NCBI GenBank assembly: GCA_025594325.1
Contig: JANHCV010000007.1
Span: forward strand, 1,116,001-1,180,000
Direction of reading: 5' to 3'
From: Blastocladiella emersonii ATCC 22665
Taxonomy: Eukaryota; Fungi; Blastocladiomycota
Length of the DNA: 64,000 nt
The position numbers were made by a program, and so were the translations under genes. Shown piece by piece: positions 24,137-25,799 of this stretch; position 1 is the first letter of the stretch; every line of letters begins with the position of its first letter. The notes below the pieces were generated by a model. The model saw only the letters and a program-made list of their open reading frames with translations. It did no database searches and was not told the DNA's origin.

Positions 24137-25799
24137 TCACCACACATAGTAGCCGCAGGGACCGCAGGTACCAACCGAACCGTAGCCGGGGATGGGCGGC
24201 GGGCCCCATGAGCGAGCGTCGGCCACGCCAGCATTAGACGGCGAGGCGAACCCACCAGCATACGAGCCCGGCTTCGCGTTCGCGGACGGCGCGCCGCGCG
24301 GCATCATGTCCCAAACGGACGGCGGGCAGAAGTACACGCCACGCGACCCGCCGGCTGCGGCGACGTTTGCGGGTGCCGCACCGCGACTGCAGTTCCAGTA
24401 CCCGCTGCCGCCCCACCCGCACGGGCCCATGCCGTAGATGGTCGGGCGCGGCGGGACCCACTCGCAGTCGCGAGCGGCTGGAGCTTCGCCGGGCCCGCGC
24501 GACCCGTCGGCGGCCGCGCCGCGGGGCATCATGTCCCAGACGGACGGCATCTCGAAGTACACGCCGCCACGCGACCCGCCGGCGGCGGCAGCCTCCGCAG
24601 GCGCTGCGCCACGGCTGCAGTTCCAGTACCCGCTGCCGCCCCACCCGCACGGGCCCATGCCGTAAATGGTCGGGCGAGGCGGAACCCACTCGCAGTCGCG
24701 AGCCGCGCCGCCCTCGGCAGCAGCGGGGCGAGGACCAGCGGAGTAGTTGGCGTACGGGATCAGGTACGGGTAGCCGCGGTAGTAGACGACGCGAGCGCCG
24801 GGCGGGACGCCGGCAGCAGCAGCAGCGGTCGCGGCCGCGGCGGCCTTGGTCTTGGCGTTGAAGTTGGTGCCGTTCTGGCCGGCCTCGGCGGCGGGAGCAG
24901 CGCCATCCTGCTTCTGCTCCTCGGCCGAGGCGAACGGGTTGATGTTGGCTGCGAACTGCGTGCCCTTGGAGGTGTCGGCGAAGACACCGACGGGCGCGAA
25001 GGCGGGCATGTTGAGGGCTATCATGTGTGCGAGCCGAGTCAGCGATCAGGTCGGGTACGCGAGCGAAAACGAGCAAACGTACCCTCAGGCATGTTGGACG
25101 AGAGAACGGGCTTCTGGGTGCGCATGTTATCGTACTGGTCAATGAGCGGGACGGCGTCGATCCACGAGATGCCGGGCTTCTCCTGGAGGACGCGCATGAT
25201 GGCGGCCGTGAAGCAGCCGCCGGTCGTGAAGCCCATGGACTCCTGCGAGTCGAGCGCCGCCGACAGCGCGACGATCTCGGCCTGCAGCTCGTGTGTGTTG
25301 GTCTCGAGGTCGACCATGGTGCCCGAGTGGCAGCAGTCGAAAACTAGGACCATGCGGCAGCCCGCGGGGAGGCACGCGAGCAGGGCGCGCACCTCGTCGT
25401 CGAGGATCATGCCGTCGGCGCACACGAGGAACTCGTCGGCGCCATCGTACTCGTCGCCCGACTCGTCCTTGGTCTGGCCGCCGTGGCCGGCGTACGAGAA
25501 GAGCAGCGTGTCGCCGGCGCACGCGTTGTAGACCATGTCCTCGAGGACGCCGAGGATCTGGGCGCGCGTGATGGGCGCGTCCTTGTCCGTGAACACGTTG
25601 ACGTTCTGGATGCCCATCATGCGCGCGATCTTGGCCATGTTGTTGGCGTCGACGTCGCATCCTACAAGTGGGCGAGGGATCGAGTGTAAGAATGCTGGTC
25701 GGTGGGTCGAGAAGCGGGGCGAGCGAGCGTACCCGGGATCGGGTTGGCGCCTCGGCCGGTCGGGTACGAGAGGCCGAAGCAGTTGGCACTGTTGACCAT
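24137..25799 (-). CDS. Metacaspase (C14 family) without N-terminal prodomain, with about 290-aa C-terminal repeat tail (508 aa)
   Basis: Exons 25799-25733, 25661-25083, 25017-24137; introns GT..AG with compatible phases. Catalytic dyad motifs FSYAGHG and FDCCHSG, plus DEYDGADE, ILDDE and QKPVLSSN. Confidence 0.88.
24291..24703 (-). repeat. Coding tandem duplication, 225-bp period (75 aa), in the metacaspase tail
   Basis: ARDCEWVPPRPTIYGMGPCGWGGSGYWNCSRGAAP..GGSRG(G)VYF..PSVWDMMPRGA occurs twice (24516-24703 and 24291-24475). Confidence 0.92.

Follow-up and report, generated by a model that had tools for sequence, protein, structure and literature searches.

Prodomain-less metacaspase of Blastocladiella emersonii with a C-terminal Gly/Pro/Tyr/Trp/Cys repeat tail: gene structure, relatives of the tail and its possible role

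Control of metacaspases is usually ascribed to an N-terminal prodomain and to a loop that covers the active site; the core found in B. emersonii has neither. Is a metacaspase of this kind joined in one protein to a long C-terminal repeat tail, and what could the tail do for it? The question is raised by a gene on the minus strand at positions 24137-25799 of the window, i.e., the whole 64,000-nucleotide (nt) stretch of DNA that was analysed (Blastocladiella emersonii ATCC 22665, contig 19, 1116001-1180000; genome of 32.65 Mb, 21 contigs). An earlier note had joined two open reading frames (ORFs) of this locus into a single metacaspase. The explanation regarded as best overall, held at slightly better than even confidence, is a compact active metacaspase with the tail as an interaction module.

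The gene was read as three exons with the ATG at 25799, all on the minus strand: exon 1 (67 nt; 25799-25733; Met1 to the first base of codon 23, with the first caspase-fold β-strand, CFGLSY); intron 1 (71 nt; 25732-25662; GTACGC...TAG, phase 1, read from the sequence); exon 2 (579 nt; 25661-25083; residues 23-215, the metacaspase catalytic domain); intron 2 (65 nt; 25082-25018; phase 1, GTACGT donor, GCTGAC 21 nt before the TAG acceptor); and exon 3 (881 nt including TGA; 25017-24137; residues 216-508, covering the last part of the fold, then a linker, then the repeat tail). The exon sum of 1527 nt corresponds to 508 codons and a stop. Intron 1, absent from the earlier note, is required by this count, and with it the protein of 508 amino acids (aa) given there agrees in length with the three exons and with the public protein H9P43_006326 (NCBI, 'hypothetical protein', 508 aa; P0001 below), the sequence of which is identical to the three-exon model. 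Exons were searched individually, the public P0001 was used for whole-protein steps, and the exons were concatenated solely for the length count. The unspliced frame meets a stop at 25041-25039, the place where the earlier note had ended it (25039). A search for other contigs encoding P0001 found none among the records, from which those of the own genome may be missing.

The public model was annotated by ab initio predictors, RNA sequencing (RNA-seq) or a transcriptome being unmentioned in the genome paper (PMC9730499); it is therefore not independent evidence for the fusion, and comparison within the genome is. This comparison bore out the canonical 65-nt intron (25082-25018) that had been proposed to join the two ORFs. 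An intron is present at the same phase-1 position in five paralogs, one of them merely 56% identical; the five introns (65, 69, 80, 83 and 61 nt) are unrelated in sequence and all have the form GT...YAG. More distant (clade-B) paralogs are intronless at the junction and encode ...NRxELL[YF]EPAFAP... in one unbroken stretch. In the protein the exon 2/3 junction lies between ...SSNMPE and ALNMPAFAPVG, and the junction-spanning peptide of P0001 is ...NMPEALNMPAFAPVGVFADTSK. L217, P220 and F222, all encoded 3' of intron 2, were invariant in an 11-member alignment (A2); residues 149-219 aligned across the junction to the C-terminal 75 residues of both Yca1 and C. glabrata MCA1 (phmmer); residues 211-220, spanning the junction, had a predicted local distance difference test score (pLDDT) of 93 in the AlphaFold2 (AF2) model. 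The fraction of G and C at third positions was 0.84 for exon 3 in the annotated frame, vs 0.66 and 0.69 in its two alternative frames, and 0.96 for exon 2. By these comparisons the spliced fusion of catalytic exon and tail is almost certainly real. Intron 1 is likewise validated by comparison of sequences: it is present in the genes for P0001, P0003 and P0005 and absent in those for P0004 and P0006, where ...NPIPGCDVDA... is encoded uninterrupted at the site of the intron.

The catalytic part was identified by a match of the whole protein to Peptidase_C14 (Pfam PF00656; 69.7 bits vs a cut-off of 21.4; residues 17-184) and of exon 2 alone (65.8 bits, 6e-18). Exon 2 contains His82 (25485-25483) in YAGHGGQ, Cys133 (25332-25330) in FDCCHSG, the run of acidic residues DESGDEYDGADE and, as far as QKPVLSSNMPE, the p10-like part; His82 and Cys133 aligned to the dyads of Yca1, C. 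glabrata MCA1 and GSU0716, in agreement with the intact dyad claimed earlier. In an alignment of 59 sequences P0001 has the family residue wherever a column is nearly invariant, the positions kept including C24, D27, H82, Q85, D88, D92, E93, D95, D98, E99, D131, C133 and D140. The acidic features by which a metacaspase was recognised, and which metacaspases share throughout, were all found: GCxxD, the DxxGDExDGxDE run, Asp before Cys, and Asp in CHSGxxxD. Acidic residues shape the basic-residue pocket and the Ca2+ site in metacaspases (TbMCA2, Yca1). The enzyme is probably catalytically active, cleaving after Arg or Lys in a Ca2+-dependent manner. The closest solved relatives by sequence were GSU0716 (3.8e-22), C. 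glabrata MCA1 and Yca1 (~1e-18), then AtMC4; Foldseek gave 1.9e-17 to 3BIJ (GSU0716), next 7QP0, 4AFR and 4F6O, with fungal, trypanosome and plant metacaspases among the matches.

As the earlier note had stated, the protein starts directly at the catalytic fold: the first β-strand comprises residues 4-9 in the AF2 model, query residue 3 aligns to residue 3 of AtMC4, and with the first strand at residue 4 there is no room for a prodomain. The strand with the catalytic Cys is separated from the p10-like part by ~6 residues vs ~67 in Yca1, and, in the comparison with GSU0716, by ~4 vs ~52. The p10-like region is present, ends with QKPVLSS and corresponds, over residues 149-219, to Yca1 271-346 and C. 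glabrata MCA1 313-388; a p20-only metacaspase-like protease (orthocaspase) is ruled out by it. The order is that of type I, p20 followed by the p10-like part with a linker of ~6 residues, type II having a long linker and type III the reversed order; the N-terminal prodomain with Pro-rich repeats and/or zinc finger, by which type I is classically recognised, is absent. Residues 1-225 are thus classed from their sequence as a complete but minimal metacaspase, a prodomain-less type I by domain order and neither type II nor type III. A distinct metacaspase type, as the earlier note had suggested, it is not in the p20/p10 sense.

How far does this layout depart from known enzymes? Fungal type I metacaspases are defined in reviews by an N-terminal Pro-rich region (PMC13304501), which matches the low-complexity prodomain that had been taken as usual for them; P0001 does differ in layout from these canonical enzymes, which are also present in B. 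emersonii, e.g., L014. With S. cerevisiae Yca1/Mca1 (PDB 4F6O) and Candida glabrata MCA1 (PDB 7QP0) it shares the fold, p20-p10 order, dyad, GCxxD, DxxGDExDGxDE and QKPxLSS (phmmer 1e-18; Foldseek 4.6e-16 to 1.5e-12). Unlike them, it has no Pro/Gln-rich prodomain and almost none of the long loop, it carries a C-terminal tail of 283 aa, and its family lies outside their clade. Type I forms without prodomain are known in phytoplankton and bacteria, GSU0716 included (PMC3734836); GSU0716 (Geobacter sulfurreducens, PDB 3BIJ) resembles P0001 in having both p20 and p10 and no prodomain, whereas its linker has ~52 residues vs ~4 and it has no C-terminal tail. Leishmania major LmjMCA has a Pro-rich interaction domain at its C-terminus, which self-processing at Arg splits off from the catalytic domain (PMC4632311). 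The tail of P0001 is likewise a Pro-rich, low-complexity C-terminal domain of the LmjMCA/MCA5 kind (35 Pro in 292 aa, pLDDT <50; PMC4632311), but no tail homology to LmjMCA was detectable among 1.84 billion representative proteins, the Cys/Trp-rich 76-aa repeats and free homologs are features of the P0001 tail, and LmjMCA differs further in its N-terminal mitochondrial signal. With Arabidopsis AtMC1/LSD1 there is a likeness in the Pro-rich accessory region bearing CxxC, the motif being found also in separate small proteins (AtMC1 prodomain: PMC3734836); the counterparts are CGPC in the P0001 tail and CW[NH]CGAPP in sister tails and small genes. The accessory region is, however, C-terminal in P0001 and N-terminal in AtMC1, and since no zinc-finger Pfam family was matched, this parallel is an analogy only. 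In view of the Leishmania, phytoplankton and bacterial precedents, the layout of P0001 is unusual yet not new in kind. Nothing relevant was found in the literature on Blastocladiella or Blastocladiomycota with metacaspase or caspase; the multiplication in B. emersonii of a core that lacks the loop and bears interchangeable tails, and for P0001 the existence of free-standing homologs of its tail, appear to be undescribed in the literature searched.

Among the 292 aa that exon 3 encodes, the most frequent are Ala (58), Gly (47), Pro (35), Ser (18), Tyr (16), Val (15), Arg (15), Trp (10) and Cys (9); residues 226-508 (283 aa) form the low-complexity tail proper with Arg-Gly among its enriched features; Arg is followed by Gly in 8 of 15 cases in the tail vs 1 of 7 in the catalytic domain. 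The order in exon 3 is: the catalytic end motif ALNMPAFAP, which is family-wide, with the clade-A linker and its NPF motif, a linker that the four closest paralogs also conserve (24908..25017, minus strand; residues 216-252; alignment A2); a spacer rich in Ala; PPGARVVYYRGYPYLIPYA; the two repeats; and a C-terminus that includes CGPC. Repeat 1 (24488..24715, minus strand; residues 317-392) has the Cys/Trp core RDCEW...CGWGGSGYWNC followed by GGVYF..SVWDMMPRG; repeat 2 (24266..24487, minus strand; residues 393-466) is the module that occurs also in the stand-alone proteins P0002 and P0123. A tail of about 290 aa with two repeats of about 75 aa, as described earlier, was thus found again. At the DNA level the repeat comprises 142 nt of 89% identity at a spacing of 228 nt. 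The two copies have an identical 37-residue Cys/Trp core with a proportion of synonymous differences (pS) of 0.40; synonymous (dS) and nonsynonymous (dN) divergence were 0.56 and 0.13, dN/dS 0.24. The identity of the core together with this ratio argues that the tail peptide is translated in this frame and is under constraint.

The tail is probably disordered according to the AF2 model (pLDDT <50 nearly throughout; short strand pairs only in each repeat core); with so few homologs, the low confidence of AF2 fits disorder and an unpredictable small fold alike. Neither a tail family nor a zinc-finger family was found in Pfam with exon 3 (E up to 1) or the whole protein (E up to 0.1). Pfam gave no family for the tail or for five related small proteins; the sole match, to HVO_1552_C, was sub-threshold (E 0.053) and was taken as chance. 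No signal peptide and no membrane or hydrophobic segment was found in P0001 or in the five related small proteins, and by these sequence features P0001 is cytosolic in character. Metacaspases of this kind are cytosolic enzymes.

Does the tail have relatives? A HMMER search of the 1.84 billion representative proteins with the tail gave six matches, all from B. emersonii: P0001 itself, the sister metacaspases P0003 and P0005, P0122, P0002 (H9P43_006428) and P0123 (H9P43_002731). The orthologs with the same tail that the earlier note had asked for were therefore obtained only in part, as relatives within B. emersonii; none came from another species. A search of the ESM Atlas with tail residues 285-508 gave no usable match. 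P0002 matched the tail with 2e-28 (BLASTP), and P0123 and P0002 are collinear with it, from PPGAR..YY..PY.IP through GVYF.P.SVWDMMPRGAP and PGSY.G to a Pro-rich, Cys-containing end. Because of this collinearity the tail appears to derive from a small protein of this sort that was fused to the enzyme and duplicated in part (~76 aa).

A set of small proteins was traced through the motif CW[NH]CGAPP, found in the sister tails P0003, P0004 and P0005. The DNA pattern for CW[NH]C[GS]AP gave 11 sites in the genome and 0 in reversed controls: 3 in metacaspase tails and 8 elsewhere, five of the latter confirmed in small stand-alone genes. In 5/5 small proteins examined the C-terminus has an aromatic residue and then Cys. 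To this set belongs P0129 (236 aa, NCBI-annotated), encoded by the convergent neighbour of the metacaspase gene (22861..23571, plus strand): it is rich in Gly, Pro, Arg, Trp and Cys, has the CWNCGAPPA motif and the C-terminus ...GGFFC, and contains two 30-aa repeats (86-nt DNA repeat at 23334-23419 and 23424-23509, 85% identical). A protein search of the own genome with P0129 returned P0129 alone, and the DNA pattern was used instead to trace the set, which, P0129 included, was found in B. emersonii only. P0129 matched the P0003 tail with 2e-4, at the CWNCGAPPA motif only; a partnership with the metacaspase is possible. The P0003 locus itself has a pair of such neighbours: two small genes with the CWNCG motif, H9P43_002082 and H9P43_002084 (plus strand; L019 73-852 and L003 2539-3216), flank the metacaspase gene H9P43_002083 (G000:C11 about 438.7-442.5 kb), and the P0003 tail has a stretch of 58 aa in common with its upstream neighbour (5e-09).

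It is tentatively suggested that the tail is a module for like-with-like interaction. It would recognise related free small proteins or other tails; this binding would bring the otherwise unregulated catalytic domain to an assembly of small proteins, and Arg-Gly sites in the tail would be candidate cleavage sites for release or processing of the catalytic domain. Parallels may be seen in the C-terminal domain of LmjMCA and in the AtMC1 prodomain, which shares a CxxC motif with the regulator LSD1. Homology of the tail to stand-alone small proteins gives targeting by like-with-like binding a concrete test object.

Several points weigh against the explanation as a whole. The interaction is read purely off shared sequence modules, the tail has pLDDT <50, and the tails differ strongly among paralogs, as would be expected also of fast-drifting low-complexity sequence. 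The match of P0129 to the metacaspase tail of its own locus is not significant (E 5.9), the likeness of the two being one of composition only; a neighbour sharing the motif is clear only at the P0003 locus; and the P0004 and P0005 loci, two of the four in clade A, have no adjacent small gene in the 10 kb around. The public gene model, moreover, rests on ab initio prediction (PMC9730499).

The main rival, unlikely but compatible with an interaction module, is a C-terminal pro-region or pseudosubstrate: the tail would fold on the active site and be removed by Ca2+-triggered self-cleavage at Arg-Gly, serving as an inhibitory element in place of the missing N-terminal prodomain and long loop rather than as a targeting device. 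P0001 indeed lacks both of the structures by which the active site is covered in the solved type I enzymes, Arg before Gly is enriched in the tail (the 8 of 15 vs 1 of 7 given above), and LmjMCA is self-processed at Arg with release of its catalytic domain (PMC4632311). Left unexplained are the occurrence of the same modules as free small proteins and the different tails (acidic, Asp/Gly-rich) carried by paralogs on the same core; a docked tail was also absent from the structural prediction, which is a low-confidence AF2 model only.

It is improbable, too, that the tail is a fast-evolving low-complexity appendage without specific function, arisen by fusion and duplication and tolerated, with only the catalytic domain of importance. 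Such a tail could be expected to have no relatives beyond B. emersonii, low pLDDT and no Pfam family, and to diverge among paralogs with 82-90% identical catalytic domains, all of which was found; against this stand the dN/dS of 0.24 of the repeats, the identity of the 37-residue core despite 40% synonymous divergence, and the keeping of the module in two free-standing genes as well.

An annotation artefact, in which intron 2 is retained, the product is a protease of ~230 aa ending at 25039, and the tail ORF (24137-25024) either yields its own product or stays silent, is very improbable. It draws on the ab initio origin of the public model and on tail-only genes in the genome (P0002, P0123 and P0122, the last starting exactly at the exon-3 boundary motif), but is opposed by the intron 2 position kept in five paralogs, the intronless paralogs that read on through the same junction, the invariant L217, P220 and F222 downstream of the intron, the pLDDT of 93 in the junction region, and the gap of just 65 nt between the two parts, too short to hold a promoter. 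Anchoring of the protease in the cell wall or cyst wall by the tail as a Gly/Tyr/Cys-rich cross-linked structural protein is hardly credible, the only point in favour being an abundance of Gly, Pro, Tyr and Cys like that of certain wall and eggshell proteins, and the wall or cyst material named in the earlier note as a target is made unlikely by the lack of a signal peptide and of a hydrophobic segment in the metacaspase and the five related small proteins.

Beyond binding of the tail to its small homologs, the four clade-A tails and about eight free small proteins could form a species-specific co-assembling system, a condensate or polymer; this is considered unlikely. The free proteins would then recruit, gate or be processed by the otherwise unregulated metacaspase. 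The features shared in such a system would be the Cys/Trp/Gly/Pro/Arg-rich modules, the terminal aromatic-Cys and the position of several small genes next to protease genes. If true, fungi would have in it an independently evolved equivalent of AtMC1-LSD1, or of the activation of caspases by adaptors, with the accessory part at the other end of the enzyme. The free-standing tail homologs, some of which adjoin sister metacaspase genes, are directly testable candidate partners, and B. emersonii is under development as a model organism, in which knock-outs and localisation by life stage may become feasible.

What is the wider family of this enzyme? The family was defined by a compact core ending in E-[LA]-L-x-x-P-A-F, no prodomain, a variable C-terminal tail and a single clade, all of which apply to P0001. 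The compact core was found at about 32 loci of the genome, together with a few canonical long-loop type I genes such as L014 (with an N-terminal extension). In a quick tree (92 rows, with long-branch warnings) 14 compact members formed one clade with a long stem (Shimodaira-Hasegawa-like approximate likelihood-ratio test, SH-aLRT, 100), separate from the fungal type I clade and from the bacteria sampled. A bacterial origin of the core was considered in view of the bacterial best PDB match; the tree placed the family neither inside bacteria nor inside fungal type I. Close paralogs have catalytic domains that are 82-90% identical and very different tails. Across the family the tails are of four kinds: Gly/Pro/Tyr/Trp/Cys (four genes including P0001, all with intact dyads), acidic, ten ending in Cys-Cys, and others. 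In a rough census both His and Cys were kept at 16/32 loci. Some 32 loop-less cores, each with a different C-terminal tail and half of them dyad-less, are a natural experiment on the evolution of accessory parts; its scope is limited by the presence of the tail in one species and by the precedents for the layout in Leishmania, phytoplankton and bacteria. In a word-limited search, matches of the catalytic part beyond B. emersonii reached at best ~40% identity over ~60% of the domain; a profile search with alignment A2, capped at 8000 candidates, was dominated by low-complexity words and did not recover all B. emersonii members. Being word-limited, both searches say little on relatives in other Blastocladiomycota.

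The catalytic His, the Cys or both are lost at, e.g., L023 (1450-2685, plus strand), L026 (1365-2510, plus strand), L021, L022, L034-L036 and L039-L046, with replacements such as GRG/DSTSS, GMAG/DASSS and GKG/DTSAS; these members, whose frames stay open and have long tails, are likely pseudo-proteases. Cys-Cys C-termini (...DMCC, ...DVCC, ...DICC, ...DGCC, ...DACC) were seen at L011, L012, L013, L024, L023, L026, L032, L033, L039 and L041; eight of the ten tails were classed as Asp/Gly-rich (DxDGDG-type repeats) and that of L026 as acidic. By its sequence the terminal Cys-Cys could be a signal for lipidation or membrane anchoring. Near-identical copies tens of kb apart were seen at G000:C1:1723272, 1779943 and 1854784 (L010-L012) and at G000:C11:2279017 and 2397213 (L032, L033); they are recent segmental duplications or unpurged assembly duplicates.

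Three observations concern individual relatives of the tail. In the P0003 gene (L019 2084-2152, plus strand) the counterpart of intron 2 has 69 nt, a multiple of three, and no stop codon; its retention adds 23 residues in frame, so that a single ORF of 377 aa spans catalytic domain and tail there. P0122 (H9P43_002062; L005, G000:C11:374756-374932; 128 aa) begins at the exon-3 motif MPMFAPVGTFAD...NPFASADEQ, has no catalytic exon, and adjoins H9P43_002063, a metacaspase gene; probably it is what is left of a metacaspase gene with a tail. In the P0123 gene (L029, G000:C11:2462300-2463300) the segment homologous to P0002 PPPPMVA.DRPPCWNCSAPAGLVF lies in a frame other than that of the annotated ORF; the annotated frame has unrelated residues across this segment and then regains the homologous C-terminus, which points to a frameshift pair or to an assembly or annotation error.

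Upstream of the metacaspase gene a putative TATA-like element, TATAAAAG, was read from the sequence at 25882..25889 (minus strand), 83-90 nt 5' of the ATG.

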